Positions 2,491 to 57,273 of a stretch of DNA of 64,000 bases are shown here, piece after piece (the stretch's first letter is position 1; every line of letters starts with the position of its first letter). The position numbers were made by a program, and so were the translations under genes. The stretch is taken from positions 6,758,001-6,822,000 of the forward strand of contig OZ076414.1 of the NCBI GenBank assembly GCA_964187785.1. Direction: 5' to 3'. The DNA is from Amphiscolops sp. MND2022. Its lineage: Eukaryota. Under the pieces are notes generated by a model that worked only from the letters and a program-made list of their open reading frames with translations, ran no database searches and was not told the DNA's origin.

Positions 2491-2640
2491 GATTTTACAC
2501 CTCGTGGAATATGGCCTCTTGGACGAATCACAGCTACCCACCCTGGGCGAGATGGAGTTGTCCGTGTCTGTACAGTCAAGACAACCTACGGAACCTTCGA
2601 TCGGCCCGCCGTTTCGCTGTCTCGCGTTTTTGCCCCGTGA
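2491..2640 (+). pseudogene. BEL/Pao pol C-terminal remnant (DUF5641-type)
   Basis: Manual translation (not in the ORF track): DFTPRGIWPLGRITATHPGRDGVVRVCTVKTTYGTFDRPAVSLSRVFAP*. This is the typical post-integrase WPLGRI..HPG.DG.VRV motif. Confidence 0.85.
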
Positions 2641-2730
2641 CGGTTCGCTCCGCGACGCTACGCATCATCTTTTTCTCCTTAGCCGCTACGTGCCCCCCTT
2701 CTTCTTCTTTGCAGCTAAGGGGGTGAAGCA

Positions 2731-2877
2731 TGTCACTGAAGTGACTCATAACTTCACTAAACTAACTGAAGTGTTTCACGATTTTATATATAATACCTTT
2801 TGACTTCCATTGAGTTGTGTTCTCACTGAGAATGAGAACCATTGATAATATAAGAATTGAAAGACTCTTCTCTTATA
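2731..2877 (+). repeat. 3' LTR (about 147 bp) of the deleted BEL element
   Basis: Starts TGTC after a polypurine tract; its 3' end matches window positions 1-24. Confidence 0.7.
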
Positions 2878-3538: not shown

Positions 3539-3669
3539 CTTGACTTGGAACTTGTCTTTCTTGCTGGCAGGTGAAGTGGAGGGTCCCAATGTGTAGGTCA
3601 GCGGGTAAGTGTTACTGGCTTTGCCCGGCTCATCTCCAATGAAACCGATTTTACCCGTCAAGAAGGATC
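3539..3669 (-). CDS. TPP2: TPP2 exon 19 (GSFLTGKIG...KKDKFQVK)
   Basis: Acceptor CTGTCAG at phase 1; donor AAG|GTACGA at phase 0. Confidence 0.8.
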
Positions 3670-6600
3670 CTGACAGCACCAGTGCGATTATCAAAACTAT
3701 TATAAACTGTACTCCAAAACAACAACAGCTACTGTCGAGTGACATTTTGAGTTATCTATGGTTTGTACTCACTATTATCATGGATAGAATTTCACTGTTC
3801 GGTACCATAATTTGTCGTCAGAAAATTGGACACTGAAATCTCGATTGGTTTCTGAGAAAACTGAGTCCATTTCTCTGGGTAAGTCAGTCAGGGTAACCAC
3901 TGTTTTATTCTCAAAGAAGCGACTGATATAATATAGTAGAAATATATGCTATTTTTAGGTAAAAATCAGCAATACTGACTTTGAGGAAACAAGGCACATA
4001 GAAAAAGTGAAAAAGTATGGTATTCCACGGTCCAAAAGGACCCAAATTGTCACCCTGATTCGAGTTAACTTGTGAAAAGGGATACTAATGGATTTTGATG
4101 TCAGACAAAAATCAACAAAAAATCTCCAAACTGCTACATTCTTTAACCCTTCCAAAAATTGTTTCGAGAATCAAATGCACAGGTTCGAAAAGTTGTCTTT
4201 AAGGAAATACGACTTTTCGAGCTAGTTTTATAAACACAAGAGGAAGTTGAGTACATTAGTTTTTTCATAATTCGACAGTTCTTTGATTTCGTGACGAAAA
4301 TTTATGTATTCAAAAAAGAAGGGACTGAATCCATCAGAATTATTATTATTATTCAATTCATATTAATTAATATTATTCAATTCAACCCACTTGACGACGT
4401 AGAATTGTCCTCCAAAACGCCCTGTGAAAACTTGCCTCATTTTTAATTATCTATCAAAATGCATCTCAAGAATTTAAAACTACCGTAGTTTTAATATAAG
4501 AAATATTTAGGAAAAATATAAGAAATATAAGAAATTTTAATATATAGAAATATAAGTTTGAATAAAGGGAAAGGTTGGTGAATAAGAAAATGATAATGGA
4601 GTAAAATTGACAGCAGATGTATGTGACATACATCTGCTGTCAATTTTACTCCATTATCATTTTCTTATTCACCAACCTTTCCCTTTATTCAAACTTATAT
4701 TTCTAGACGATGTATTTTTTATGCTGTTCTTTGATTGGATCGTTTGATAATCGTGCCTGGCACATAAGGTTTGGGCAACTTGTCCTCTGGAAGGGGAGCG
4801 GCGAACAGCACAGTCGTGTCTCCTTTGGACAGGGAGGTGGATCTGGAGAAACAAGGGAGGAGTAAAAACAACCACAAGTATCCAGGTGCAACCAGAAAAA
4901 ACCGAATTTTCGCAGCCAAATAGTAATAAGAAGCGTAACGGCGAAGAACTAAATTACGTTTTAGTAAGAAGGTGGAGGTTCGAAAAGGGGAGTTTTTCAC
5001 GAAAACGTCTTACGCATATTTTAAAAACTGCGCTTTTTGAGCCTTAGATATAGCGCCAACTTTAGACGTTCCTGTCTTGTTAATTACTATTTTAAGTAGG
5101 AAATAGTAATACTGACACCCATACTCTTATCACTGACACAATCTCCTTGTAATAAGGGCACAAAATCTCTCTTACGCCAAATCACGGTTTCGGTACGCGC
5201 GGTCCTTATTTTAAAGAAAAGATATTCGGCAGGCAAAAAGTAGGAACAAGCCAGGAACGACCCAAGTCTGCGCCATATCTAAGACTCAACAAATTGTGAA
5301 ATTTTGGGGAGAAAATGAAAACGGTATATCCAAACTTTAACACAGAGGCGAAGCGGTGCTTCGCAACACATGACGAAGACATTATTTTAATATGCGTATA
5401 TATATTATTTTAATCGCATGCGTATATATTCAACAGTTCAACTTTGTTCAATAACGTCCCTATGGCACAGTGGTCAACACTTATGCCGTGCAATCGGGAG
5501 GCTGCAGGTTCGAATCTCTCAGGGGTTTTGGCTTTTGTCTAAAAGGCGCTCATTATGAAGTTGACTATTGTGGAAAAAAAACTTTCTTAGCTGGACTGCA
5601 ATGCACATTGACTTCGTCATGTGCAAAAACGGTATATCCGAACATTGAAAACGTTATTTCCGAACTTTGAAAACGTTATATCCGAACTTTGAGACCGTTA
5701 CATCCGAACTTCAACTTTGAAAACTAAGTTATATCCAAACTAAAATATTTCGGCTAAAAAGATGAACGAAAAAGTGGTCCATCCATTCTTATCAAAAAGG
5801 CGCCGACTAAAAAAGGGGTCTTTTTTAGATGAGTGACCTGAATGCGGCTGCCTTGTTGAGATTGGGGTTAGTGAAGAAGAGAAGGTTGACGGGAGAGGGC
5901 AGTTTGCGCGACACTATCAGCTGAAGTCCGTCCAGTTTCTCCAGCACGTCATACTCACAGGATCTGATCCACAGTTTGATAGTGTAGTCACCTGCGAACA
6001 TCATCAATTCGTTCGTTACCAGACAAAAGCGCCCAAAACACACAGTCCAAAGCGCCACTATGAAAGATAGTCAGCAGGACATTTGCTGACACTTTTCCAC
6101 AAAACTAAGTTCCTCAAACCAATTGAATGGGAGTGACAGATTTCGTCCCACATGGAAATTTTGACAGATTTCGTCCCATTTTTTAACATTAAAACAGATT
6201 TCGTCCCATTTTTGACAGATTTCGTCCCAAATAATTATTATAACGTAGTCAGCTATGTTCACATACCCCTAGTGCCCTAAATGCAGGAGCGAAGCGAAGC
6301 GGAGCGACGTGCCATATGGCCATGCCTCAATGTTGCTACTTGGCGAAGGGAGCGAAGCGACCGAGCCATACAACAAATATGCTAACCTCTTCAAAAAAAT
6401 CAAGTTCCATGCATATTGGCTGTAACAGCACCGACGAAATCTGTCAAAAATGGGACGAAATCTGTTAAAAATGGGACGAAATCTGTTTGGGACGAAATCT
6501 GTCAAAATTTGACGTGGGACGAAATCTGCCTGGGACGAAATCTGCCACATTCCAATTGAATAGTAAATTTACAAGAGTGTACTGACAAATTGCTTCTTTT

Positions 6601-9600
6601 AGAAGATAATATAATTTGTTGAGAAATGCAAATATTGGCAGCGTAAGTTGTTTTCGCTCAGAATTCGTTACATTTGCTAAAATGTCGAATCTCGCATTAT
6701 CAGTGAGCCATCATTTTCTTTGAACACCTTCAATTAGGTTTAATTACAGGCAGTCGGACGAATCAGATCGAAATTTAGCGAGGCGCCTTGTATTGGGGCA
6801 CTTCTGTCTGTACACGCATGAAACATTTCAGGCAACAAGACAAGTAGGTCTGGTTTAACAAAAGTAGTTAAAGGTTGTTCAAAAGTTCTAGTTCGAGAGA
6901 TCTGCTTTAGACCTTTGTTCAACTGCAAAGCACTTGTAGACTTTAATTCTAGGCAGTAAAAACTAATTCTATGTCGAAAATCCGACAAAAATTGACAAAA
7001 AAACTGGTTCAGCCACATGATTGTACAAACATATCTACCGCTGGAATTTTCAACTACCAGAAAACCAGACGAAATCAACAAAAGAAGTCAACTGAATGCG
7101 CCGGCTAAAAACAGGCTTCCCGGCCGTACTTGGGGACTGGTGTTCATAAAATCAATCAAGCTAATTCGAAGACGTTTTTATGATAAAGTATGTTTATTAT
7201 TTAAAACGAGCAATTTTCGAATGTGATGAAAAAATCGATTTTTTATCTATTGGAAATACGGAAAACGAAAGAACAGAAAAACTCGCCCTCAGACTACGAG
7301 CCAAAACTGACTTCGTGAAACAATCGTTTTTCAATAAAGCACCTTACCAAGTTGAGTACGAGAAACTGAAGAAGGATCTAATAAGTTATTATCTCCAAAA
7401 ATATGCAGCAGAAGCGGACTATTCAGCAGAAATAATTTTAAAATGTTTGCGTGAGTTCCCATCCAACTAACCGTACACTTGATAATGGATTATCTGTTGA
7501 TCTTCTTTTAACTTTGTCAATTTTCTCAATTCATATGTTCACTACCTCTTAGAATGGATTTTTTACATTTCATTTTATGAGGGGAATTCAGTGCCCCTTT
7601 TTGCTGTAGAGTTTGTTCAACGTAGTACCTTTGCCCAGCACGCAACTGTAGTTCTCAGTCTTGAAGTCTCCGTACCCCATGACCTGCTTGTTGGCGTCGT
7701 AGACGACCCACATCTGGGAGTCGAACAGGTTCTCGTACAGTTTGTCGCAGAGGAGCGGACACTCGGGGTACACCTCCTTATCTTTGACAGGGTGCGAGTA
7801 ACAGTAGGTCAGTTCCAGGCCGTAGATCACCTCATCTCTGTACCACCAGTCAGCACACGCAGGGATGATCAAACTAGCTCTGTACGTGTTCATTTCCTAT
7901 CTCAACGAACTTTATTATCAGAGGCGAGAATAACGTCTAAATAACAACCACCCCCATTTATCCCAGAACGCTATATCCAAACTTTTAAAGCACAAAAGGC
8001 ACCCTTTTGGTGTTTCGAAACGTTTTGCTAGTTTTTCATAAAAACGTCCTGAGCATATTTTAAAAACTTTGCGCTTTTTGAGCCTTAGGTATAGCGCCGA
8101 CTTGAGACGTTCCCGTCCTGTTCGTTTTTATTTTCATGCCCTTATCACTAAGCTAGGGATGAGAAACTCGACCAATGCTCGAGAATTTGGCGTAGAGATG
8201 TTCCAACATGGTACGCTCCAATACAGCCAGTTGAATCACAAATCGAGTTACTTTCGAGAAGCTGACTTCAAAGACCCATCGATGGTGAGTTGAGAGAAAT
8301 ATCTGAGAATCAAATATTCATCACAGATTGCAAGGAGGCTCTATAGCTTCCAACGCATTCCTGTCACTCCTTTTTAGTGGGCGCTTTTCTTTAGAAACGA
8401 GTCGACTATAGTCATGGCTTTTCGTCAGTGTTTTTTTAAGACCACCTGAACTGACCAAAATAGTTCTACAAAAGTTCTACAAAATATTATTGCACAATTT
8501 GGCCTAGCGAACTGAACCAAAAAGGTTTTTCATGTTTTCCAGCGTAACATACCATACCGGGGGAGACCAAAGGGTCCCTCCCCCTTTTCTTTTTTTTCGG
8601 CACTGCGAGACTTTTTTTCGGAAAAAATCTTTTCCCCAAAGGGTCCCCCTTCAATTTTTTTGCTGTTTTGCGACAGAATGGATGTTGGAAAATCCCAAAG
8701 GGTCCCCTCTTTCAGTTTTTTTCGGCACTGAGATTTTTTTCCGAAAATAAAAATCCCCCCTTCAATTTTTTGATGTTTTGCGACAAAATGGATGTTGAAA
8801 ACCTCCAAAGGGTCCTCCCTTTCAGTTTTTTTCGGCATTGTGAGACTTTTTTTTCAAAAACTTCTTTTCATAAAAGGGTCCCCAACTCACCAATACTTTG
8901 ACATATTGAAGCCCTTTTGCTATTTTTGAGCCTTAGATATGGCGCCGACATGGGCCGTTCCCCCCGGCTTGTTAATTACTGGAAAACATTTCCAACTTGA
9001 ACTTTTGCTTTGGACCTTCAAGGTCAACTTTTCTGATAATTTATTTTTCCGCTCTCATTTCACAATGAGACAACGGAAAATCTCAGCCAAGTTTTTTCAA
9101 GTGTTGCCATACTCTAATTTTAAAAGTGTAGGATAATCCCTAGTGGTTGCGTTTCCAGGGTTCTCTGGAACCCCAGCCAGTGTGTCTGAGGGGGGTAGGG
9201 GGCCGCGGATGAAGACGTCCCTCTGTGGGTGCAAGGGACTGATCCTGGTTTCAGTGGGGCGCAGAGGGGTCACCAAAGAGGTCAAAGACGAGTGCGGGTC
9301 AACTGTCACTGTCTCCAGGCGAGACTGAAATGAAACAAATTTGAAAAAGTAAGGGGACCCTTTCGTAGTGGGAAAGTGTAAGACATTAACAATACATGAA
9401 ATCAATACTTTTTGAAGTTCAGGTAAAGATATTTAATTTTAATTTAATTTAACAGAACAATTTCATTCTACCTCAGCAAAATTGAGAATTAGGTTATCAA
9501 ACCTAGTTGAGAAAAATGCTTTCTTCCGAGGACCTTGCAAGATCATTACCAATCTTTCACGTAAACGCTTCCCTTCAAAGAAAAATCGTTGCAAAATTTT

Positions 9601-48600: not shown

Positions 48601-51600
48601 ACCCGAAGTCTCTCAAAGCCATGGAGCCATTGTTTGCTACTTCATTCTTTAGTTTTTCAATCGGACCCTGTGTACAGCTGGCAAATCAGCATGTGAACTT
48701 TCGGAGTTCAGGAGCATCCTTGTAGTATTCGAATATTCTTTCACTCTATGAGGGTGAAATATGACCTGCCCTGTAGCATCATTGATCTCAAGACCTTCAT
48801 GCGCGTCCGTCTTTGCTTGGTCTCTAGCTTTTGCGAGCCTGAAAAACTTCTTCCTTCTTTCAGTGTTTTCGAGTTCTTTGTAGAAGGCATCTATAGCAAA
48901 TGACCTAGCTTTTGCCTCGCCTTGCTCAACCTATTTTTTGGCAATTTTGTATTGCTACTGCGATATCTGATTCTCTCTGCCACGTCTTGTAGCAGTTTTT
49001 CTTCATTGCTTCCTGTACAGTTTCGATCCACCACCATGTTTCTCTAGTCAGGGCCTTTCATCCTCTGATGGTTCCACAGGTTGCCATTCCTGCAGCGCTG
49101 ATGGCAACCCTGAATGCCTCCCAATGGCAGTTCTGATCTGGCAGTTGGTCGAGTATTCGGAGACAATATGCAACCAGGATATCGTGGTCACGCTGTTTCC
49201 ATAAGCGCGTTGTTTTCGGCTCTCTTCCGAGCTGAGCGTCTAACTTTTCGGTGCTGGTTTCAAGCAGATCAGTGTGTTGGATATCGAAAGGCAATCATGC
49301 AATTCATCATGAAATAACTCATTCAAAAATCATAGTTTGTTCATAAATTCATTCAGCTTCAATGGAATAGAAATGCTAAGTTGTTCATGCCGATAACCAT
49401 TTCAGTTGTTTTCAATTTCCCGCTCTAAATCAGTTCTAACTTCTCGTTAACTCTCTTTCTCAATCAGAAAACAATTTTGATAGAAACAACAGTTTTTATC
49501 GATCAGCTAGTTTAGCACATATATAGAACAACAGTCTCTATTATTGAGTTATTCTAGCACCGTACATTTTGGTGGCCATTGAGAGGCAAGAGATTTATCA
49601 CGAATTACTCGAACCTCTACTACATTTAACAAGCAGTTTATTCCAACATGGGGGATGAAACTGAAGCTCAGAGATTAACGAAATTAACAAGAACAAGAGG
49701 TGGGACACGAGCTGCTGCAACAAAAAGGATGAATCGTTTGGATGAAATCCTTGCAGATCAAGTGGATACAGAAACCAAGCTTGAGTTAGCCGCTTTGTGT
49801 AACTTACTCAAGAAGCATCGTCAGACTCTTGATGAGATGAACTTGGAAATTCAAGGACTAACGAACATTGATGACATAGACGGTGAGATTGCCAGTAGTG
49901 AAGACTACGATGCGAAAATCGAGCTAGCAATACAACGAGCAACAACAAAACTAGCAACAGACAGAAGTTCAACCACAATCACTTCAAACAACTCATCCGG
50001 TGGTAATCAAGATTCAAGATTGAAATTACCCAAATTAGACATTCCAAAGTTTGATGGCTCATATTCTCAGTGGACATCATTTGTTGATCTGTTCGACGGA
50101 GCAGTTGACTCAAATACAAATCTCTCAAGCTCACAGAAACTGTTCTACCTCAAGGGACTGCTGACGGGCGAGGCCAAACGTCTTCTTTCAGCCATCACAA
50201 TCACTGATGCGAACTATGGCAAAGCAAGAACGATGTTGCAAGAGCGTTATGAAAATCGGAGAGCAATTGTTCGTGAACATATCTCATCAATTGTTACCGC
50301 ATCAACAGCTACCAAGGAGGCAGGTTCGTTGCGCAATTTAATGCAGACTGCCGATGAGCATAGACGTGCCCTGGAAGCTCTGGGTTTGAATATGGATGAA
50401 ATGGACATCTACACAGTCTATCATGTTGTTGAAAAAATGGACGCAGAATCAAGGCGAGAATGGGAGCTGGAACATCCTGGCACCGATCTCCTCAAGTACG
50501 AAGATCTACACAAGTTTCTGATCACAAGATGCCGTGCATTGGAAGCTGCACATGGCAGTAAGCAATCCGCCAACAGGGGGATTGAATTTGGGCAGGCACA
50601 AAATGGTGGTAAGCGGAACCATTCACTGTCCGTCACTCAAACCAACAAATGCCCACAGTGCAAACAAGCTCATGGATTGTTCGCCTGTGATGAATTCAAG
50701 AAGAAGACAGTTGATAATAGACGCAAATTCGTGAGAGACGAAGGGTTGTGTTTCAACTGTTTACGTTCAGGTCACACAGCTAAAGACTGTTCTTCGACGA
50801 AGAAATGTAAGTTATGCAATAAATCTCATAACACGATGTTACATATCAATCAAAACAATGTTGCCGCATCAGTGGCCAGCGATGAAACAACCAAAACAAG
50901 TACTTGTACACAAATTGCCACAGCCATGGGTTCTAGCTATCAAGTGTTGCTACAAACAGCCAACATCCAAGTGCTAAACAAACAAGGACGTCCAGTTTTT
51001 TGTCGTGCTCTACTTGACAGTGGGTCACAAATCAACCTTATGACTAATGCATGCCGCGCAAAATTGGGACTTGCATTAGAGAACGCTGATTCATCATTCA
51101 CAGTGGCTGGTACGGGGAAAATTGCGCCAAGCGGGAAATGCAAGATACAATTACCAATCAAAGACTCAATCATCACAACACCAGCGTTAGTGGTCAAAGG
51201 AGGGCTAACAATGCCACTGCCTTCAGTGGAATTTGACAGGCCAATCGATTTGCCCAAGCTACCACTGGCTGATTCCAAATTCAATATACCCTCTGAGATT
51301 GACATTCTCATTGGCGCTGAACTTTATGAATCACTTCGAACTGGCAAAACTATCAAACATGGTGATCTTCATTTCACAAGTACAGCTTTTGGCTACGTCG
51401 TGTCTGGCCCAATCAAAACAAAGAGCAAAGGATCGCCAATAGTGAATCACATCATGACACAAGATGATTGTCTTCAGAAATTTTGGGAGACAGAGGAGAT
51501 ACCATTCTCGCCAGAAAACACATGGACCAAGGAAGAACGAGAATGCTCGAAGCATTACGATGAAACTACGACGCGTCAAAGCGATGGCCGCTTTGTAGTA

Positions 51601-54600
51601 GAAATGCCGTTCAAGAAACCAACCCCTGCATTTGGTGACTCATTCAAACAAGCCAGACTGCGTTTCGAAGCACAAGAAAGGAGATTGCAGAGAAACCCTG
51701 GGGTGAAGGAGCAATACAAGGCATTCATCAAAGAATTCGAAGACATGGGTCACTTAGAAGAAGTGCCTCCAGATGAACTTGATAATGGTTGTGAAAATCA
51801 TTACTATCTTCCTCACCACGCAGTGTTCAAAGAGTCAAGTACAACTACCAAGTTGCGAGTAGTATTTGATGGATCGGCAAAGACGTCAAGTGGAGTGTCG
51901 CTCAATGACATTCTAATGATTGGTCCAGTACTTCAACCTAACATCTTTGATCTGCTGATTCGGTTTCGACTCTACAAATTTGGACTCACAGCCGATGTTG
52001 CAAAGATGTATCGCCAAACAGCACTTGCTAAAAAAGCAAGAAGATTTCACAGACTTTCGTGGCGTGATAATCCAAAGGATGAATTCAGACACCTTCAATT
52101 AACACGTGTGATATACGGGATAGCATCAAGTGGCTACCATGCTGTTCGCTCACTTCAAGAGACAGCAAAACTCACCGAAAACGAAAATGTTCGCACAGCT
52201 ATTCTCGAAGGTTTCTACGTGGACGACTTTCTTTCAGGCTGCAATACCCTGGAAGATGCCAAGGGTCTGCAAGATGAACTCATAGCAACATTGGAAAAAG
52301 CCAAATTGCCCCTTCGGAAATGGGTCTCTAATGATCAAACACTTGTGGAAAGACTGCCGCCAGATATGCGTGGAGGTGATTTAGTGAATCTATTCGAAGC
52401 AGATTCAACTATACGAACGTTGGGAATCACGTGGCAACCTCAGAAAGACCATTTCAAGTTCACTTGTACCCTACCCAAAATCAATCCACCTGTGACTAAA
52501 AGACAAATTTTGTCAGAGATTGCCAAATTGTTCGACCCAATAGGGTGGCTAACTCCAATAACCATCAAGGCCAAGATCTGGATTCAGCGTTTGTGGACCC
52601 TGGGTCTAGCCTGGGATGAACCTCTGGCAGAAAATCTGATTGAAGAATTCAATGCAGACATCAAGGGCATCGAAACTCTGGAAACATTCACATTGAATCG
52701 CTTCATCACAGACTGTGACCCAGTCAAACACGAAATTCACTGCTTCACAGATGCATCCATTCATGCATATGCAGCAACTGTTTACCTCGTCACAGAGAAA
52801 GCCACAGGCGAAAGAATTTCCCATCTCATTGCAGCGAAATCAAAGGTTGCCCCCATCAAGACAATCTCATTGCCACGTTTAGAATTGTGCGGAGCACAAT
52901 TGGGCGCGAAGTTGACCGATAAGATACTCAAGGCATTCAAATCAGTCAATCTGAAGAATCTGGAGACATTCGCATGGACAGATAGCACGATCACGTTAGC
53001 TTGGATACAGGCTGTACCTTCAAAATGGAACACATTTGTGGCAAACCGAGTGGCCGACATACAAAATTTCATCCCACCATCTCGTTGGTTTCACGTTCCT
53101 ACGAAGTCAAACCCAGCAGACATTGCATCACGGGGTACACATGCACCTCAGATAATCAACAACCAACTCTGGTGGAAAGGCCCTCAATTCTTGACGAGTC
53201 TCAATCAATGGCCCGACAAGCCGGTCATTGGAGAAGTTGCAATTGAGAAAAGGAAAATCAAACCAAGCGTGTATAGCGTCGTGTTACCTACGCCACAACA
53301 AGATCATGAAAGGTTCTCACAATATAAACGACTGAGAAACACGCAAGGTTATGTTTTGAGATTCATTCGACAATTGCGTTCGAAGGGTCCACAACAACTT
53401 TGTCTCACATTGACCGAACTGAAGTCTGCTCAACACCAAATAGTCAAAGATCATCAAGCTCAATACTTTCAAGAGGAAATTCAACTACTCCGTGAAGAAA
53501 GGCAGCTTCCACGGAAACACAAATTCATTGGACTGAATCCCTTTATTGATGAAACCGACGGTCTTATGAAAGTCGGTGGCCGATTGTATCAATCTGACAT
53601 GGACGACAATGTCAAACACCCAGTTCTACTCCAAGCCGATTCTCATCTCGTGAAGATTTTGATTCGTCATCATCATCAACAATGTCTTCATGCTGGTCCA
53701 CAATCGACATTGTACAACCTTCGTCAACAATTTTGGTTCGTGAATGCCCGAAATGTTGTTCGTCGAATAATTCAAGCGTGTACTACATGTGCTCGGTTCG
53801 CACATACATCATTTCAAACCCCTATGGGACCTTTGCCTGAAGAAAGAATCACTCCTAGTAAGCCATTTACAAATTGTGGCATTGACTTCGCCGGACCATT
53901 TCATATCAAGTTGAAAGGAACTTTGAAATCAACAGAGAAAGTGTACATCTCATTGTTTGTTTGCTTCGCCACAAAGGCCATTCACCTGGAAATTGTCTCT
54001 AGTTTGACTACCGAAGCATGCATTGCCGCATTGAAGCGATTTGTAGCAAGGCGGGGAGTACCGGCTGCAATATTTAGCGATAATGGTACAAATTTTATTG
54101 GTGCACGAAATGAACTTATACAACTTAAATTGATCCTAGCGAAAAGGAGAAATTCTGTTTCACAATTTGCTACAAATCTTGGAACACAATGGACGATGAT
54201 CCCGCCCCGAGCCCCACACTTCGGAGGATTATGGGAAGCAGGTGTGAAAGCTGTCAAACTGCATCTCAAAAAGATCATGGGCAATACAATTCTTTCGTAT
54301 GAAGAGTTCCTAACACTAGTTATACAAATTGAAGGGATATTGAATTCACGTCCACTATCCCCGATGAGCTCTGAACCTAACGACTTGGAACCTCTTACGC
54401 CAGGGCATTTCCTCATGGGAACCTGCCCAAATAGCCTGCCAGAAGACCCAAGACAATCGAACATCTCGAGTGAAAGGCGATACCACCTTGTCAAGAAGAT
54501 GAGACAACAATTTTGGAACCGCTGGACACGAGAGTACCTAAATCAGCTACAGAATGTTTCAAAGTGGAAGCACACTGGTCTTCAACCTAAAGTCAATGAT

Positions 54601-57273
54601 TTGGTCTTGGTCGCAGAGGACAATACGGCTCCACTTCAATGGCCCATAGCCAGGATTCTTGAGCTTTATTTGGGGAATGATGATATTCCTCGAGTTGCAA
54701 AGATCAAAACAAAATGGGCTACTCTTATACGACCAGTCTCTAAACTTCGACCTTTCCCTTCAGAAGCTGTCTGAGTTATTACTCAATTCAAATACAAGGA
54801 TGCAGCGTGATTCATGGCTTGTACCTACCCTACCCATTTTCAATCCCCCACGAAACATTCATACAAATCAACTTCTGACAAAGTATTGAGCAATCTAAAA
54901 GGAGTACAAATATTGAAACTAGTTCAACGCGGGGAGAATGTTGGATATCGAAAGGCAATCATGCAATTCATCATGAAATAACTCATTCAAAAATCATAGT
55001 TTGTTCATAAATTCATTCAGCTTCAATGGAATAGAAATGCTAAGTTGTTCATGCCGATAACCATTTCAGTTGTTTTCAATTTCCCGCTCTAAATCAGTTC
55101 TAACTTCTCGTTAACTCTCTTTCTCAATCAGAAAACAATTTTGATAGAAACAACAGTTTTTATCGATCAGCTAGTTTAGCACATATATAGAACAACAGTC
55201 TCTATTATTGAGTTATTCTAGCACCGTACACAATGTAACAAAGTCGCCGAAAACTTCGAAGAGCCCGCACGGATTCAGAGGACGCTGAAGAGTCTGATTA
55301 CCATTCCAACGATACAGACGAAGAATGTGAGGAGTTCCAGGAGCTGCGGCCGAAGAAAGTGTCCGGCAACCACCGTCAACACTTCATAGGCTCTCTCAAA
55401 TCAAGGTGAAAACACAAGCCCTCCTCTGTGAAGAGTAGCGATGCTTGTAGCTTTTCTATCATTGAAAAGAATCGATGAACAAGAAGCAACTGGTTGTAAC
55501 AATAGAAAATTCAGGAATTCAAATAGACGAAGAAACTCTTAATGGCTTCAAGACTAAGTCCAGCGGTGTGTTAGGAAGTTGACATGCCAAATTCACACTT
55601 TTGAGGCGAAAACTTTGGCATTTTAAGTATCGTGTCACTTGAGATCCGCATGGGACATACTTGTCATTGGGACGTACGTCAATATCTACTTCTTGGCTCA
55701 ATATTTTGGCGAAAAGGAGCAAAACATGCAATCTATGATATAGGGGAAAAAGGCAGAATTCTGGAGTTTGAACAGTTTCTCTTTGTAACTCAAGTCTTTG
55801 CTTGGTAGAATCCAACTGGCCGCTTTCTGCTGAACACTTTCGATGATCTTGAGATTGCTTTTGGACGGCTTCCAAAGAGCAGAGCCATAGCTTATAACTT
55901 CTGTTTGAAGTCAACTATTCAGCGCCAGTTAATCTAACAATTTCACTCGCATTTGACATTTTCGTCGCTTGACTTCGCGTTTTTATCGTTTTGACTTTAC
56001 ATTTTGCCCACCATTGATGTTAATGACCTCTTTAGGTCCTTAAAACCAGCTTCCCTATCACAAAAATTAATTTGTGATATGCTGTTTTATAGACGAGCAT
56101 ATTTTTTGCGATTTCGTGTTTTGTTTTATAAATTAGTTCTCCGCTTGCCGATGTTTTCACATTTATTTTCACGGGACCGTTACTGACACTGCAAGGAGGC
56201 TCTGCAGCTTGCTGCGTTTCGACACCTTCCACACCATTTTGACAAGCCCCCTCTGTAACCTGGGCCATTCATACGTAGACCATTATCTTTTTGGTATCGA
56301 GGCGCACGGTCCATTTATTGTTTAGAAGACTAGAGGAGAAAAGAGTTAAAACCAGCTTCCCTGAATAATTATAACTTCGAAATCCAAAATCGGTTCGAAA
56401 CATTCGAATCAATAGTAATACTTTCCATCAAATAATTTGAAATAATCCTTTAGAAAGGCCACTGATTGAAATGATCGCGGTGAATATGGAGGAAAAAATT
56501 CAATTGTGCAGTAATATATTGAAACTTTTGGACAAAATCCATTAGATCCAATGAATCAGTAAACCTTGATGACTTCAAATCTGTCAATTTTAAATTCGTC
56601 AGTTATACGATCCCCAAATTAATCAAAACTGAAATTAAATACTCACCCGTATATAATGAATTCTGATAAATTCAAAAATCAAATGAATTAATGAAAATTA
56701 ATCAAAACAAATTAAACCTCGCTCGTATAGAATTGATTCTGATGAACTTATTCATAATACGAATGAATCACTCAAATCAGCGAAATCAAAAATTGAACCA
56801 TTTCCAGAATGATCTCCCACGCTTGAGAAGAGCTTTCAAGAAGCCGTCTAAGTCAAAGCGACCATTGATACAGAAATTGAGCTCTTGAACTTGATTCCAG
56901 AATCCCATTTTGTTGAACAGAACTGTTTTTTGAAGAATTAATTTAGTCAATGAATCGACTTGTATGAAATAGTTCATGGAAAGACGATTGAATTCGAACA
57001 GTCAAACTTGTGAAAACTCACTCATTATTATTATTATTATGTGGATGAGAGATTTTAATGAGATGAAAGCATCGATGAACTAACCTGTAGTCCTTTGGCC
57101 AAAGGATCCACGCCCGTATCAATGATGGCAATGGTAATTCCACGACCATCATATTCGGGATAAAGACGCAAAAATGAAGCAGTTTCAGTTTCCGTCTTGG
57201 GGACCAAATCATGATAAGGAAAATCTATTGGGATGTCAGGTACTTTCCCACAGCTCGCCGATACGTCCGTCAT
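3539..57273 (-). CDS. TPP2: Tripeptidyl-peptidase II (subtilase S8), 19 coding exons in window, 3' end outside window
   Basis: Exons are colinear with known TPP2 motifs: [21 protein letters not shown] (Asp), HGTHVAGIA (His), NGTSMSSP (Ser), [39 protein letters not shown]. Splice phases are consistent across all junctions given the non-GT donors noted. Confidence 0.97.
4545..4705. repeat. Perfect palindrome: two 80-bp arms, 1-nt spacer (centre 4625)
   Basis: 4545-4624 is the exact reverse complement of 4626-4705, checked base by base. Confidence 0.97.
4757..4842 (-). CDS. TPP2: TPP2 exon 18 (RSTSLSKGD...[12 protein letters not shown])
   Basis: Acceptor TTCTCCAG at phase 2; the only phase-1 donor that fits is CCAG|GCACGA (GC-AG intron). 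Confidence 0.85.
5000..5290. repeat. Two tail-to-tail ends of a dispersed repeat family (...GAGCCTTAGATATRGCGCCGACTT + short hairpin + TTGTT)
   Basis: The same terminal motif recurs at about 8040-8125, 8920-8975, 20465-20496 (-), 22391-22420 and 23420-23460. Architecture resembles Helentron/HINE 3' ends (inference). Confidence 0.6.
5456..5525 (+). pseudogene. tRNA-like sequence (tRNA pseudogene or SINE head)
   Basis: A-box TGGCACAGTGG, B-box GGTTCGAATC, CCCT/AGGG acceptor-like pairing and trailing T run; anticodon loop irregular. Confidence 0.5.
5630..5742. repeat. 22-bp tandem repeat (GTTATATCCGAACTTTGAAAAC), about 4 copies
   Basis: Directly visible; the motif also occurs singly near 5320 and 7970. 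Confidence 0.8.
5838..5991 (-). CDS. TPP2: TPP2 exon 17 ([10 protein letters not shown]...NKAAAF)
   Basis: Acceptor TTCGCAG; donor CAG|GTCACT; matches the KGDYTIRLQIR motif. Confidence 0.9.
6129..6552. mobile_element. Mutator/Foldback-like MITE
   Basis: 9-bp TSD CAATTGAAT (6120-6128, 6553-6561). Inverted arms are built from tandem ACAGATTTCGTCCCA motifs. Confidence 0.85.
7629..7837 (-). CDS. TPP2: TPP2 exon 16 ([11 protein letters not shown]...YSCVLGK)
   Basis: [18 protein letters not shown] motif; CTGAC branch-like site then TACAG acceptor (alternative acceptor 7830); donor AAAG|GTACTA. Confidence 0.9.
8520..8975 (+). repeat. Dispersed repeat with internal ~60-bp AAAGGGTCC subrepeats, ending in the hairpin-TTGTT motif
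   Basis: Related sequence in opposite orientation at about 13100-13560 and a partial copy at about 23290-23460. Confidence 0.65.
9113..9324 (-). CDS. TPP2: TPP2 exon 15 ([10 protein letters not shown]...[11 protein letters not shown]...RDVF); 3' boundary uncertain (9113, 9140 or 9172)
   Basis: Acceptor TTTCAG at phase 0; matches the TLRP..K.KPL..RD motif. Candidate donors: GA|GTATGG (9113), AG|GGATTA (9140), GGG|GTTCCA (9172, needs acceptor 7830). Confidence 0.8.
9440..11380 (+). mobile_element. Degenerate 5'-truncated LINE (RT plus C-terminal CCHC region)
   Basis: Fragments [40 protein letters not shown] and CSCG....NAYHFFFSC across frameshifts; AT-rich 3' tail. Confidence 0.85.
11618..11782 (-). 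CDS. TPP2: TPP2 exon 14 (VVPSLLMEV...EVSFHG...RIDLR)
   Basis: SFHG motif; weak acceptor CTCGAAG; donor AGG|GTACGT. Confidence 0.85.
12007..12517. mobile_element. Foldback-type MITE with tandem-motif inverted arms
   Basis: Tandem GAAAACTCAACAC units at the left and TGTGTTGAGTTTTC units at the right; only a 5-6 bp flanking match (CTGGT), so superfamily is uncertain. Confidence 0.7.
13562..13632 (-). pseudogene. tRNA-derived sequence (Glu-like head) adjoining a dispersed repeat
   Basis: Minus strand TGGTCTAGTGG A-box, TTTTCAA loop and GTTCGAACC B-box; anticodon and acceptor stems are poorly paired. Confidence 0.5.
14134..14291 (-). CDS. TPP2: TPP2 exon 13 (GASFATVKL...KLVLHCLQV...FSFE)
   Basis: Acceptor TTTTTCCAG; donor GAG|GTCAGG; matches GATWAEV...FVLHAVQL. 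Confidence 0.85.
14789..15312. mobile_element. MITE, 524 bp, with long TIRs and TA flanks
   Basis: TIR CACCGTTTCTAATTTAGATGAACAAAATTTCAA at both ends, flanked by TA/TA. Confidence 0.85.
15770..16032 (-). CDS. TPP2: TPP2 exon 12 (MLYLTN...[10 protein letters not shown]...FLRPPE)
   Basis: GPLFRVP-type motif; acceptor GACTTCAG; donor GAAG|GTGAGA. Confidence 0.92.
16630..16804 (-). CDS. TPP2: TPP2 exon 11 (TKRGILL...QPWVDVP)
   Basis: RGI.L and W.Q.P-type motifs; acceptor TTTTCTAG; donor CC|GTAACG. Confidence 0.88.
17258..17412 (-). CDS. TPP2: TPP2 exon 10 (RAIQNTA...[11 protein letters not shown]...SAK); alternative donor at 17231
   Basis: Matches RALENTA..G.GIIQV.KA; acceptor TGTTGTAG; donors AAAG|GTACCA or CATT|GTAAGC, both phase 1. 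Confidence 0.88.
18239..18416 (-). CDS. TPP2: TPP2 exon 9 with catalytic Ser (NGTSMSSP)
   Basis: APGGAITSV...[12 protein letters not shown]; acceptor TTCAG; donor CAG|GTACGT. Confidence 0.97.
18834..20143 (-). mobile_element. Tc1-family DNA transposon (DD34E transposase), 3'-truncated
   Basis: 330-aa ORF with HTH-like N-terminus, [14 protein letters not shown] and SPDLNPIE (34 residues between D and E). One TIR CAGTGCCTCACGAAAGTG plus TA at 20143-20145. Homology is lost after ...EWNKI (about 18897); second TIR not found. Confidence 0.92.
20885..20990 (-). repeat. tRNA-derived (Pol III box-containing) repeat fragment
   Basis: Minus strand TGGCCTAG A-box-like and GGTTCGAGTC B-box, with spacing too long for a tRNA. 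Confidence 0.35.
21134..21324 (-). CDS. TPP2: TPP2 exon 8 (FGNNGP...WSSRGP)
   Basis: GNNGP and WSSRGP motifs; acceptor CGTCAG; donor TCG|GTGAGT. Confidence 0.95.
21991..22083 (-). CDS. TPP2: TPP2 exon 7 ([30 protein letters not shown])
   Basis: Not in the ORF track; manual translation matches YGEA...GRI.E.I...V.KH...VSS. Acceptor TGTACAG; donor CAG|GTAAGC. Confidence 0.92.
22675..22779 (-). CDS. TPP2: TPP2 exon 6 ([22 protein letters not shown]...ANYS)
   Basis: IGD.R...METGT motif; acceptor TTGCAG; the in-frame donor reads CAG|TTATGC (non-canonical). Confidence 0.9.
23500..23734 (-). CDS. TPP2: TPP2 exon 5 with catalytic His (HGTHVAGIA...[10 protein letters not shown])
   Basis: HGTHV motif; acceptor CTTTAG; donor CAG|GTATGT. 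Confidence 0.97.
23771..24120. mobile_element. hAT-family MITE, 350 bp
   Basis: 8-bp TSD AAAGCAGG (23763-23770, 24121-24128); TIRs CAGGGTTCAC / GAGGGTTCGC; lies about 35 bp from the exon 5 acceptor. Confidence 0.85.
25681..26150 (+). mobile_element. Degenerate, internally deleted Tc1/mariner transposase
   Basis: [21 protein letters not shown] (first catalytic Asp region) and a later MDWPACSP motif; boundaries approximate. Confidence 0.65.
26511..26736 (-). CDS. TPP2: TPP2 exon 4 (TSRSDEQ...[16 protein letters not shown]...CVDTSFT)
   Basis: D.GP..D..VW.DG motif; acceptor TTTGCAG; donor CAG|GTTGGT. Confidence 0.92.
27504..27721 (-). CDS. TPP2: TPP2 exon 3 ([11 protein letters not shown]...RKQALWEE...SSTSS)
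   Basis: GIKN..D.YP motif; acceptor TTTTTCAG; phase-0 donor TCG|GTTTGT. Confidence 0.88.
27888..28409. mobile_element. MITE with CCAGAGATGTTAC TIRs (hAT-like termini) and internal GCATAATT motifs
   Basis: 13-bp perfect inverted termini; no clean TSD. Confidence 0.7.
29742..29916 (-). CDS. TPP2: TPP2 exon 2 ([22 protein letters not shown]...[10 protein letters not shown])
   Basis: TTDG.PKI.D.IDTTG.GDV motif; acceptor TTCAG; donor TAG|GTAGGA. Confidence 0.96.
30110..30330 (+). mobile_element. CRE-like non-LTR retrotransposon 3' remnant (end of restriction-like endonuclease)
   Basis: [43 protein letters not shown] resembles the F.P.VF.T.GG.G..A..F.KRLA..I..K....Y..VM.WIR consensus as I recall it. 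Confidence 0.55.
31200..33540 (+). mobile_element. Degenerate CR1/L2-like LINE (ORF1 end, AP endonuclease, start of RT); repeated at about 36060-38000 and 41130-43060
   Basis: RMIIVELK (ORF1-like), DVI.VSETWF, GGVLIL and [10 protein letters not shown] (APE), TGPDEI..LA.EISHHL (RT N-terminus); many stops. Confidence 0.75.
31676..48185. repeat. Tandem array of a ~5-kb composite unit (3 near-full copies plus a deleted fourth) in TPP2 intron 1
   Basis: Anchor CTAAATCCTTGAAAGG at 31676, 36061 and 41127. Repeated ORFs: MFEQSG at 33070/37530/42590 and MTKISMET at 35495/40558/48025. A ~2.7-kb deletion occurs at about 45672. Confidence 0.95.
48190..49274 (-). mobile_element. Degenerate RTE-clade LINE RT fragment, interrupted by the BEL element
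   Basis: Minus-strand fragments [39 protein letters not shown] and [16 protein letters not shown]. Confidence 0.8.
49275..55230 (+). mobile_element. Full-length BEL/Pao LTR retrotransposon
   Basis: 292-bp TG...CA LTRs (49275-49566, 54939-55230) that read as identical; TGGTGGCC PBS-like motif; PPT GCGGGGAGAA; flanks CAGTG/CAATG (5-bp TSD with one mismatch). Confidence 0.97.
49648..54774 (+). CDS. BEL/Pao gag-pol polyprotein, 1708 aa, uninterrupted
   Basis: DUF1759-type [11 protein letters not shown], three Cys/His knuckles, [60 protein letters not shown] tail. Confidence 0.97.
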   Translation: MGDETEAQRLTKLTRTRGGTRAAATKRMNRLDEILADQVDTETKLELAALCNLLKKHRQTLDEMNLEIQGLTNIDDIDGEIASSEDYDAKIELAIQRATTKLATDRSSTTITSNNSSGGNQDSRLKLPKLDIPKFDGSYSQWTSFVDLFDGAVDSNTNLSSSQKLFYLKGLLTGEAKRLLSAITITDANYGKARTMLQERYENRRAIVREHISSIVTASTATKEAGSLRNLMQTADEHRRALEALGLNMDEMDIYTVYHVVEKMDAESRREWELEHPGTDLLKYEDLHKFLITRCRALEAAHGSKQSANRGIEFGQAQNGGKRNHSLSVTQTNKCPQCKQAHGLFACDEFKKKTVDNRRKFVRDEGLCFNCLRSGHTAKDCSSTKKCKLCNKSHNTMLHINQNNVAASVASDETTKTSTCTQIATAMGSSYQVLLQTANIQVLNKQGRPVFCRALLDSGSQINLMTNACRAKLGLALENADSSFTVAGTGKIAPSGKCKIQLPIKDSIITTPALVVKGGLTMPLPSVEFDRPIDLPKLPLADSKFNIPSEIDILIGAELYESLRTGKTIKHGDLHFTSTAFGYVVSGPIKTKSKGSPIVNHIMTQDDCLQKFWETEEIPFSPENTWTKEERECSKHYDETTTRQSDGRFVVEMPFKKPTPAFGDSFKQARLRFEAQERRLQRNPGVKEQYKAFIKEFEDMGHLEEVPPDELDNGCENHYYLPHHAVFKESSTTTKLRVVFDGSAKTSSGVSLNDILMIGPVLQPNIFDLLIRFRLYKFGLTADVAKMYRQTALAKKARRFHRLSWRDNPKDEFRHLQLTRVIYGIASSGYHAVRSLQETAKLTENENVRTAILEGFYVDDFLSGCNTLEDAKGLQDELIATLEKAKLPLRKWVSNDQTLVERLPPDMRGGDLVNLFEADSTIRTLGITWQPQKDHFKFTCTLPKINPPVTKRQILSEIAKLFDPIGWLTPITIKAKIWIQRLWTLGLAWDEPLAENLIEEFNADIKGIETLETFTLNRFITDCDPVKHEIHCFTDASIHAYAATVYLVTEKATGERISHLIAAKSKVAPIKTISLPRLELCGAQLGAKLTDKILKAFKSVNLKNLETFAWTDSTITLAWIQAVPSKWNTFVANRVADIQNFIPPSRWFHVPTKSNPADIASRGTHAPQIINNQLWWKGPQFLTSLNQWPDKPVIGEVAIEKRKIKPSVYSVVLPTPQQDHERFSQYKRLRNTQGYVLRFIRQLRSKGPQQLCLTLTELKSAQHQIVKDHQAQYFQEEIQLLREERQLPRKHKFIGLNPFIDETDGLMKVGGRLYQSDMDDNVKHPVLLQADSHLVKILIRHHHQQCLHAGPQSTLYNLRQQFWFVNARNVVRRIIQACTTCARFAHTSFQTPMGPLPEERITPSKPFTNCGIDFAGPFHIKLKGTLKSTEKVYISLFVCFATKAIHLEIVSSLTTEACIAALKRFVARRGVPAAIFSDNGTNFIGARNELIQLKLILAKRRNSVSQFATNLGTQWTMIPPRAPHFGGLWEAGVKAVKLHLKKIMGNTILSYEEFLTLVIQIEGILNSRPLSPMSSEPNDLEPLTPGHFLMGTCPNSLPEDPRQSNISSERRYHLVKKMRQQFWNRWTREYLNQLQNVSKWKHTGLQPKVNDLVLVAEDNTAPLQWPIARILELYLGNDDIPRVAKIKTKWATLIRPVSKLRPFPSEAV
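57085..57273 (-). CDS. TPP2: TPP2 exon 1 with catalytic Asp ([10 protein letters not shown])
   Basis: 63 codons from ATG; [17 protein letters not shown]; donor CAG|GTTAGT. Confidence 0.96.

Follow-up and report, generated by a model that had tools for sequence, protein, structure and literature searches.

Can introns of an intact, selected animal gene begin with something other than GT, and if so, what sets them apart? The question is raised by a window of 64,000 nt, the whole stretch of DNA analysed here, from Amphiscolops sp. MND2022 (G000:C6:6758001-6822000 of a 1.07-Gb assembly). Its minus strand encodes tripeptidyl-peptidase II (TPP2). A preliminary description of the sequence had proposed that up to three donors of this gene are not GT, that its exons end strongly in AG and its introns begin with a weak core, and that recognition of positions +1 and +2 is relaxed. 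Our analysis of the sequence suggests that at least two, and probably three, introns of the gene are unable to start with GT, and that the donors concerned lie at the edges of terminal inverted repeats.

Exon 1 matches Drosophila TPP2 (PDB 3lxu, E 3.5e-12), and a profile built from 30 full-length TPP2 proteins gave 19 colinear exon matches within the window, all on the minus strand, between 57231 and 3551. A profile search of 40 kb of added flank located exons 20-23 at 25-29 kb past the window start; the gene has 23 exons, 19 of them within the window, and spans ~83 kb. Once spliced, exons 1-20 form an open frame of 1124 codons that carries the catalytic motifs DTGVD, HGTHVAG and GTSMSSP. Genome searches found TPP2 in single copy and no processed retrocopy in the assembly. 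All five exonic differences between sequence variants are synonymous (5/5), which speaks for purifying selection on TPP2. The closest relative found, among the distant TPP2s returned by representative and exon-seeded profile searches, is a cephalopod-like sequence with 39% identity.

Exon junctions were placed by an exhaustive scan of every in-frame, stop-free join between neighbouring exons, in which any donor dinucleotide with an AG acceptor, or AT-AC, was allowed and the joined peptide was scored with the TPP2 profile. All TPP2 junctions were deduced from DNA, the public runs that hold the locus being four genomic DNA runs. GT-AG was at or near the top for 15 of the 18 window introns: it was the single best solution for introns 1, 2, 4, 5, 7, 8, 9, 11, 12, 13, 14, 16 and 17 and, for introns 3 and 10, fell at most 2-3 bits short of the best. 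As GT-AG was recovered without being imposed, this outcome validates the scan. GT also solves introns 19, 20 and 22 well, intron 21 is weakly defined with GT options, and intron 3 has several GT options; a workable GT-AG solution exists for 19 of the 22 introns.

Over 21 introns, the donors have A at -2 (16 introns), G at -1 (17), a purine at +3 (16), A or C at +4 (9 and 7) and G at +5 (16), giving a consensus of (C)AG/GTA(A/C)G(A/T), where the slash marks the exon-intron boundary; they are looser than usual at +3 and +4 only. The described strength of the exonic AG was thus reproduced, while the weakness of the intronic core had been overstated, as G at +5 is kept in 16 of 21. Our model gives the same count of 14 of the first 18 exons ending in AG, but 16 rather than 17 ending in G, the higher number being reached only with the donor GTTTGT at 27504 in the ill-defined intron 3. 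The hexamers GTTGGT, GTACCA, GTCACT and GTACTA that had been named are present, as are GCACGA, GTACGA, TTATGC and AG/GGATTA (last exon bases 4757, 3539, 22675 and 9140, respectively).

Intron 18 has GC at +1/+2 and AG at its 3' end (...TATGTGCCAG/GCACGATTATCAAAC...(1087 nt)...TTTTGATAATCGCACTGGTGCTGTCAG/GATCCTTC), and this is its only frame-preserving, homology-colinear junction. The GC donor (exon end 4757, acceptor 3669) reaches 23.4 bits and the best GT 10.1, and the junction ...KPYVP-G-SFLTGK is colinear, with no indel, with Pecten ...KAAKA-G-CFLTGT. Its donor GCACGA is indeed one base from the GTACGA of intron 19 and differs solely at +2 from the commonest TPP2 donor, found as GTACGT in introns 9 and 14 and as GTACGA in intron 19. 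The view that GCACGA lacks a strong remaining consensus did not hold, as the hexamer fits GTACG(A/T) outside +2 and keeps G at +5; since it equals the local consensus there, it is a good GC donor by local standards. Ordinary U2-type GC-AG introns make up ~1% of introns in most animals.

Intron 6 reads TT at the same positions (...GCCAACTACAG/TTATGCTTGC...(591 nt)...TTTGTACAG/TTTCGGGGAG). In the scan the TT donor (exon end 22675, acceptor 22083) scores 70.1 bits and the best GT 53.3, and the predicted exon 6-7 join (...AACTACAG/TTTCGG) yields a product that is colinear, with no indel, with Pecten ...LVNY-S-YGEASH in the subtilase active-site N-x-S-x-G-E block. A 7-nt direct repeat, TACAGTT, is read at both junctions; a junction repeat of 7 nt is found in 1.4% of mismatched donor/acceptor control pairs (P = 0.014). 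Only excision at the two TACAGTT copies yields the Pecten-colinear product, the best GT being ~17 bits worse, and the GT alternative adds 25 codons of intron-like usage (-10.4 bits). With TACAGTT at both junctions the cut can be placed as TT-AG, as AG-AC (2 nt upstream) or as GT-CA (1 nt upstream), with identical mRNA in each case and GT-AG in none. The described need for a non-GT-AG intron therefore stands, while the label TT is a convention, given that the repeat permits AG-AC. The TT itself is real DNA and no assembly error: contigs of all four public DNA runs, which comprise at least three sequence variants from two samples, carry it and are colinear with the genome through intron 6. These contigs differ near intron 6 at 22384, 22518, 22606/7, 22644 and 22722 and by several indels; they show no variant at 22673-22676 and no intron-less joint.

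For exon 15, homology is unable to place the donor, since the exon model adds 22 residues where other animals carry RD-x5-RQIYG, and the scan returned many solutions within a few bits. In-frame GT options lie at 9217 and 9172 (acceptor 7830) and at 9113 (acceptor 7837). A log-odds table, trained on the remaining TPP2 exons versus the TPP2 introns, served to score codon usage. Positions 9201-9139 score +13.2 bits, with an exon-window mean of 12.6, and exceed all 511 open-frame intron windows; positions 9138-9112 (DYPTLLKLE) score -7.7 bits, below every exon window. Codon usage thus flips from exon-like to intron-like at about 9140, where a change in coding character had been described, and this switch disfavours the GT sites at 9217, 9172 and 9113 and favours CACTAG/GGATTA. 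We consider a GG donor likely here, on the composition of the sequence; intron 15 would then have GG-AG termini, or AG-AC after a 2-nt shift. A GC donor at 9204 with acceptor 7835 (76.1 bits, and exact colinearity with orthologues across exons 15 and 16) was set aside as unlikely, because its GCCCCC is without consensus and the 63 nt that it skips are exon-like. The proposed three non-GT donors accordingly differ in standing: those of introns 6 and 18 are forced by homology, and that of exon 15 is favoured by codon usage where homology is blind.

All three non-GT donors are found at the outer edge of terminal inverted repeats (YAG/GGAT...ATCCCTG; CGATTATCAAA and TTTGATAATCG in intron 18), the partner arms of which end 10-22 nt before the acceptors TGTACAG, GGTACAG and TGTCAG. 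The first 33 nt around each donor were folded against the last 45 nt of the intron, with 420 mismatched donor/acceptor pairs as control, and significant repeats were obtained for introns 6, 18, 11, 13 and, with the cut at 9140, 15. The inverted repeat of intron 18 is perfect over 11 bp, which none of the 420 control pairs reaches (P < 0.0024), and its terminal duplex amounts to -23.6 kcal/mol (P = 0.005); written as repeat ends, the intron reads CCAGGCACGATTATCAAA and CCAGTGCGATTATCAAA. In intron 6 the arm TTATGCTTG is a 9-bp perfect complement of 22100-22108, where it pairs with CAAGCATAA (P = 0.0095); its repeat ends are CAG, a gap of three positions and TTATGCTTG on one side and CAGGGATTATGCTTG on the other, the 5' copy being without the GGA of the 3' copy. 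Intron 15 pairs AGGGATTATC with GATCATCCCT at 9 of 10 positions (-18.4 kcal/mol, P 0.045), has the repeat ends TAGGGATTATCC and CAGGGATGATC, and contains in its tail CTGAC, a branch-site-like word. In 104 kb, with both strands counted, YAGGGATKAT occurs only three times (~0.8 expected, an estimate): one site (9142) marks the intron 15 donor, and the other two are 3' partners, that of intron 15 at 7860 and that of intron 6 at 22094. All three sites are at TPP2 intron ends, no more than 25 nt from a splice junction and in the orientation expected.

A genome-wide search with a composite 3' motif, ATMATCCCTG-N(0-14)-GTACAG, matched TPP2 intron 6 and also intron 1 of the proteasome alpha-4 gene, PSMA4 (...AACATTTTTGACAG/GGATGCTACTAG...(1327 nt)...GTGATCATCCCTGGTTTGACGGTACAG/TGAAAAGATT; ends CAGGGATG.../...CATCCCTG). 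Alignments with human PSMA4 in the PDB place residues 1-61 in exon 1 and residues from 63 onwards in exon 2, with Ser62 on the split codon AG/T, and the nearest GT is 14 nt downstream and out of frame. On these alignments a second, unrelated and highly conserved gene is predicted to need a GG-AG (or AG-AC) intron. Its repeat (8 + 5 bp) has a terminal duplex of -23.1 kcal/mol, beyond the 1% control quantile, and its layout is matched by intron 15. The four odd introns, three in TPP2 and one in PSMA4, share the word GGAT(T/G)AT at their repeat edges. The need for non-GT introns in both genes means that tolerance of non-U at +2, and perhaps of non-G at +1, is needed. This much of the proposed relaxation of +1/+2 recognition we retain; a general loosening we do not, as the odd donors are all at terminal-repeat edges.

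The preliminary description had pointed to the 5' end of U1, U6 and U5 loop 1 as places for compensating changes; there are none, and all are canonical. At least 21 U1 genes score above the Rfam cut-off, the best of which start with AUACUUACCUG, U6 carries ACAGAGA and AGC, and U5 loop 1 is GCCUUUUAC. In Fritillaria borealis, which has <10% GT/AG introns, the U1, U6 and U5 motifs are kept, the U12 system is lost, and the changes concern U2AF paralogues and N6-methyladenosine (m6A) in small nuclear RNAs (snRNAs) (PMC13326754). As that species keeps the motifs too, canonical snRNAs here do not refute tolerance. U12, U11 and U6atac gave no match in the genome, in searches where, out of tens of thousands of first-look candidates, only 41-45 were scored; these are weak negatives. 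Two U1 copies have altered 5' ends, ATATTTAAACCTGG (G000:C13:49602042-49602206) and ATTCTTACCTGG (G000:C12:24071965-24072121) as compared with ATACTTACCTGG; they may be pseudogenes or variant U1s able to pair with other donors. A tandem array of at least 35 U5 snRNA genes, spaced ~680 nt apart, is located at G000:C6:35087000-35134000.

TPP2 exons were mapped in Pecten (29 exons), Lingula and Trichoplax and aligned with the window protein; three other TPP2 representatives were discarded for this purpose, being intronless bacterial genes or without DNA. Seventeen of 19 aligned intron positions are shared with none of the three animals: only intron 1 coincides, and intron 13 is at most 2 residues from a Pecten and a Trichoplax intron. 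Pecten and Lingula TPP2 share most intron positions. On this alignment nearly all ancestral TPP2 introns of this fast-evolving animal were lost, and most of the present ones, GT-AG introns included, are new. No Pecten, Lingula or Trichoplax intron lies within 4 residues of the odd introns, but the same is true of 17 of the 19, and so position alone fails to single the odd ones out. The turnover fits a history of gains in which GT has since been acquired by the old introns, while element ends remain visible in the young ones.

The ends of Ac/hAT elements read YAGGGATGAAA. The odd intron ends resemble such transposon ends in sequence (YAGGGAT...ATCCCTG, or CCAG..CGATTATCAAA). Candidate target-site duplications are TACAGTT, present twice at intron 6 (P = 0.014), and two interrupted 8-mers, GTGCCAGG versus GTGC(TGT)CAGG at intron 18 and TTTGACAG versus TTTGAC(GGT)ACAG at PSMA4; none is present at the intron 15 junctions.

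We lean, with some reserve, towards reading TPP2 introns 6, 15 and 18 as a separate class, bounded by repeats, probably derived from transposons and tolerated by a standard-looking U2-type spliceosome. DNA transposons or fold-back remnants would have landed in exons and been removed as introns. The end of the element, or the target site, would supply AG/G, and the second intron base would be whatever the element carries (G or C); in intron 6, a 3-nt loss (GGA) would have left TT. The cut would fall directly after a YAG that marks the outer edge of a short inverted repeat at the intron terminus, and 10-22 nt would separate the partner arm of this repeat from a downstream (G/T)GT(A)CAG acceptor. 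Exonic (Y)AG, plus G at +5 where present, could give U1 and U6 enough pairing, and the terminal helix, acting as we infer on splicing itself, would shorten the effective intron and bring its ends together. A U2-type spliceosome with unchanged U1, U5 and U6 motifs would tolerate G or C at +2, and at intron 6 it would either tolerate U at +1 or cut 2 nt upstream, with A...C termini. We know of no support for catalysis with U at intron +1. The sequences, their repeats, the junctions forced by homology, the TT in DNA and the canonical snRNAs are shown by the data; the transposon origin is deduced, short of a demonstration, from repeat structure, lineage-specific position and precedent. More tentatively, and with doubt prevailing over the joint claim, the host animal might be a third lineage, after larvaceans and copepods, with a second working class of spliceosomal introns. 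These would be young fold-back introns bounded by transposon ends and cut after exonic YAG whatever follows, even TT, or equivalently AG-AC introns with A...C termini as in Fritillaria, and their rise would have come as ancestral introns were almost completely replaced, with the U1, U5 and U6 motifs unchanged.

Several results weigh against the reading of the odd introns as a transposon-derived class. Introns 6, 15 and 18 have ends that are unique in the genome: whole-intron genome searches found no multi-copy element sharing them and matched nested inner repeats only. The composite 3' motif had 4 genome matches against 2 in the control, which gives no sign of an expanded family, and a 5.4-fold genome-wide excess of YAGGGATKATSC, tried as support for a repeat family, stems from internal segments of large repeats that are unrelated. 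Any target-site duplications are partial at best. Nor is the helix specific to non-GT donors, since terminal repeats occur in 2 of ~18 GT introns, 11 and 13. The exon before intron 11 ends in CC; the duplex of intron 13 reaches -36.7 to -41.3 kcal/mol, and its arms are set back from the splice sites by 14 and 23 nt, the arrangement to be expected of an element that landed in an existing intron. With few introns, the association between repeats and non-GT donors is weak (Fisher P ~0.008 with three non-GT donors, 0.03 with two). For the exon 15 donor the case is one of composition and analogy, its 22 added residues are absent from all orthologues, and a young exonised stretch could mimic the codon-usage switch.

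Point mutation under a generally relaxed recognition of +1/+2, independent of transposons and helices, could also produce odd donors that are each one substitution from a good local GT (GCACGA versus GTACGA, TTATGC versus GTATGC). The strong exonic AG could compensate for such changes, and introns of the types GA-AG, GG-AG and GC-AG are published in Oikopleura and Eurytemora (PMC7072748). Point mutation gives no reason to expect that the three odd donors and that of PSMA4 should all sit at repeat edges with GGAT(T/G)AT; nor was any snRNA change found, which is not decisive against relaxed recognition. We regard this explanation as unlikely. The same introns could instead form a class like that of Fritillaria, cut 2 nt upstream to give AG-AC (introns 6, 15 and PSMA4) or AG-TC (intron 18), with GG, GC and TT at +3/+4. 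All four odd introns have an exon ending in AG and an intron ending in (A/T)CAG, the shifted cut leads to the same mRNA, and AG-AC and AG-AT are the commonest termini of Fritillaria borealis (PMC11282704). Such a cut would remove the chemically awkward U at +1 of intron 6. An A first and C last pair is compatible with catalysis in AT-AC introns. Any AG/GT...CAG/ intron can be rewritten as AG-AC, though, so that the pattern on its own carries no weight; a workable GT-AG exists for 19 of the 22 introns, and no unambiguous AG-AC case was found here. We judge this class improbable.

A more sceptical view would be that the junctions are mis-inferred or the allele is broken, with transcripts using GT-AG or the gene decaying. 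Splicing at every junction is indeed deduced from DNA sequence, homology and codon usage, the exon 15 donor has in-frame GT alternatives, and the protein is divergent (39% identity to its nearest relative found). Yet the blocks around the TT and GC junctions, the active-site NxSxGE among them, align well and without indels to Pecten, Lingula and 10 other animals; the scan recovers GT-AG elsewhere in TPP2; TT is unchanged across no fewer than three sequence variants from two samples; the gene is single-copy, has only synonymous single-nucleotide differences (5/5) and keeps its frame open; and PSMA4 likewise needs a non-GT donor. An artefact or defect is quite improbable on these grounds. Removal without the spliceosome, dependent on the helix as proposed for euglenid nonconventional introns, would account for the joining of both ends and the junction direct repeat of intron 6, features which those introns share (PMC6221363, PMC3935182). 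It is hard to credit here, as exonic AG, G at +5 (introns 6 and 18), YAG acceptors and tails with branch-like CTGAC or TTGAC are kept, and as 10-22 nt remain between the 3' arm and the acceptor, which keeps the helix from juxtaposing the cut sites exactly. Intron 6 might lastly be a degenerate U12-type (minor) intron. The U12 donor word is RTATCCTT, and its donor TTATGCTT fits this word at 6 of 8 places. It is wrong for U12 at +1 and +5, however, its last 40 nt (gatggaatttccaagcataatccctggtttgtacag) hold no TCCTTAAC-like branch word, which is expected 10-26 nt before the acceptor, and the minor snRNAs are unmatched in the genome (~45 candidates scored per search, a weak negative). This reading was rejected as extremely improbable.

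Table. Features of the TPP2 gene, of its odd and repeat-bearing introns and of PSMA4 intron 1. Positions are those of the window unless a contig is given; a slash marks an exon-intron boundary.
Feature	Position	Strand	Remarks
TPP2 gene, exons 1-19	3539..57273	-	PDB match, profile, exhaustive junction scan
TPP2 exon 1	57273-57085	-	
TPP2 exon 2	29916-29742	-	
TPP2 exon 3	27721-27583	-	donor uncertain
TPP2 exon 4	26728-26511	-	
TPP2 exon 5	23734-23500	-	
TPP2 exon 6	22779-22675	-	
TPP2 exon 7	22083-21991	-	
TPP2 exon 8	21324-21134	-	
TPP2 exon 9	18416-18239	-	
TPP2 exon 10	17412-17258	-	
TPP2 exon 11	16804-16630	-	
TPP2 exon 12	16032-15770	-	
TPP2 exon 13	14291-14134	-	
TPP2 exon 14	11782-11618	-	
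TPP2 exon 15	9324-9140	-	donor probable
TPP2 exon 16	7837-7629	-	
TPP2 exon 17	5991-5838	-	
TPP2 exon 18	4842-4757	-	
TPP2 exon 19	3669-3539	-	
Intron 6	22084..22674, 591 nt	-	CTACAG/TTATGC...TTGTACAG/TTTCGG
TACAGTT junction direct repeat, intron 6	5' copy 22673..22679; 3' copy 22082-22088	-	read directly
Intron 6 inverted repeat, 5' arm TTATGCTTG	22666..22674	-	starts at intron +1
Intron 6 inverted repeat, 3' arm CAAGCATAATCCCTG (reverse complement CAGGGATTATGCTTG)	22094..22108	-	ends 10 nt before acceptor
Intron 11	16033..16629	-	GT-AG, 12-bp terminal inverted repeat CGACCAATTTCA / TGAAATTGGTCG, P < 0.0024
Intron 13	11783..14133	-	GT-AG, strong terminal helix around CCAGTGA, P < 0.0024
Intron 15 (favoured)	7838..9139, 1302 nt	-	CACTAG/GGATTATCC...GGTGGTACAG/AGATGAG
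Intron 15, 5' arm TAGGGATTATCC	9131..9142	-	candidate cut after TAG
Intron 15, 3' arm ATCATCCCTG (reverse complement CAGGGATGAT)	7860..7869	-	22 nt before acceptor 7837
Intron 18	3670..4756, 1087 nt	-	GTGCCAG/GCACGATT...GTGCTGTCAG/GATCC
Intron 18, 5' arm CGATTATCAAA	4743..4753 (+4 to +14)	-	CCAG at -4..-1 also pairs with CTGG
Intron 18, 3' arm TTTGATAATCG	3685..3695	-	then CACTGG, tail TGCTGTCAG
PSMA4 intron 1	G000:C7:9550541-9551867, 1327 nt		GACAG/GGATGC...GATCATCCCTGGTTTGACGGTACAG/TGAAAAG; GG-AG or AG-AC

The TPP2 introns contain BEL/Pao, Tc1/mariner and other repeats. Intron 1 (27 kb) holds an intact frame of 1708 aa (49648-54774, plus strand) for the gag, protease, reverse transcriptase, RNaseH and integrase of a long terminal repeat retrotransposon, judged BEL/Pao-like by eye from its translation, and, at ~31500-48500, three to four copies of a ~5-kb unit whose frames recur near 32269/36493/41791, 33070/37530/42590 and 35495/40558/48025. 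An open Tc1/mariner-type transposase frame of 330 aa is located in intron 8 (18834-19826, minus strand), and a nested ~600-nt repeat with dozens of genome copies at 85-91% identity in intron 15 (8370-8973). Intron 19 includes an open, Q/P/T-rich frame of 447 aa on the strand opposite to TPP2 (1460-2803, plus strand). Just upstream of the TPP2 start lies an intact copia-type polyprotein frame of 1112 aa (59307-62645, minus strand), with a fragment at 58068-59285. Positions 94-715 are of low complexity, open in several frames on both strands and made of repeated PEGRQKEPRRTPRERPRR-like units, probably a tandem repeat. Elsewhere in the genome, CAGGGATTATCC is found inside a high-copy repeat on G000:C1 in inverted pairs ~14.5 kb apart, for example 4747327(-)/4761807(+) and 30801084(-)/30815626(+), which are probably the long termini of a large element.

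Two open questions are touched by these introns, the near-universality of GT-AG and the origin of new introns, and animals that break the rule are very few. If confirmed at the RNA level, they would provide natural and easily assayed test cases in essential genes, at the TPP2 active-site junction and at PSMA4 Ser62. Such cases could gauge how far a spliceosome with unchanged snRNA motifs departs from GT, and could serve to test both the aid of a terminal helix to splice-site pairing and the insertion of transposons into exons as a route of intron gain in the near-complete replacement of TPP2 introns. In practical terms, gene predictors restricted to GT-AG will break such genes in this genome. 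The analysis contributes a TT/AG-AC case verified in DNA, the codon-usage test of exon 15 and the snRNA checks. Among the papers searched, none tied non-canonical splicing to acoels or Xenacoelomorpha, and none tied minor introns to TPP2.

Among known systems, introners (Huff et al. 2016; Gozashti et al. 2022, PMC9860276; PMC11282704) likewise carry terminal inverted repeats at the intron ends, a junction direct repeat (here in intron 6), one splice site apparently supplied by the element or target, and lineage-specific positions. They form multi-copy families, whereas the ends described here are unique, only the nested repeats are multi-copy and target-site duplications are at best partial. 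Introners have been found in only two animal groups (PMC9860276), and transposon-derived introns with terminal inverted repeats, target-site duplications and non-canonical borders are already known (PMC11282704). Fritillaria borealis (Henriet et al. 2019; Soo et al. 2026, PMC13326754) is alike in having non-GT introns with such repeats, and with duplications that are here at best partial, at species-specific positions, an unchanged U1 5' end, U6 ACAGAGA and U5 loop 1, an apparently missing U12 system (here a weak negative) and AG-AC termini, which are reached here only through the 2-nt shift. It differs in that >90% of its introns are non-canonical, compared with ~3 of 22 in TPP2, where all acceptors can be read as AG.

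The GA, GG and GC introns with AG acceptors of Oikopleura dioica and Eurytemora affinis (Frey & Pucker 2020, PMC7072748) resemble introns 15 and 18 and that of PSMA4 in their G at +1, non-T at +2, normal AG acceptor and occurrence in an animal with heavy intron turnover; in contrast, intron 6 has T at +1, the link to terminal repeats is salient here, and our junctions are read from the genome. Ordinary U2-type GC-AG introns are matched by intron 18 (CAG/GCACGA...CAG/), the rest of whose donor is that of the gene's commonest GT donor; intron 18 stands apart from them through a perfect terminal inverted repeat of 11 bp and a position specific to its lineage. Euglenid nonconventional introns (PMC3935182, PMC6221363) share with the odd introns variable borders, a helix joining the ends and a repeat-caused ambiguity of the junction; they differ from them in that spliceosomal signals are retained here and the helix leaves the two cut sites unaligned.

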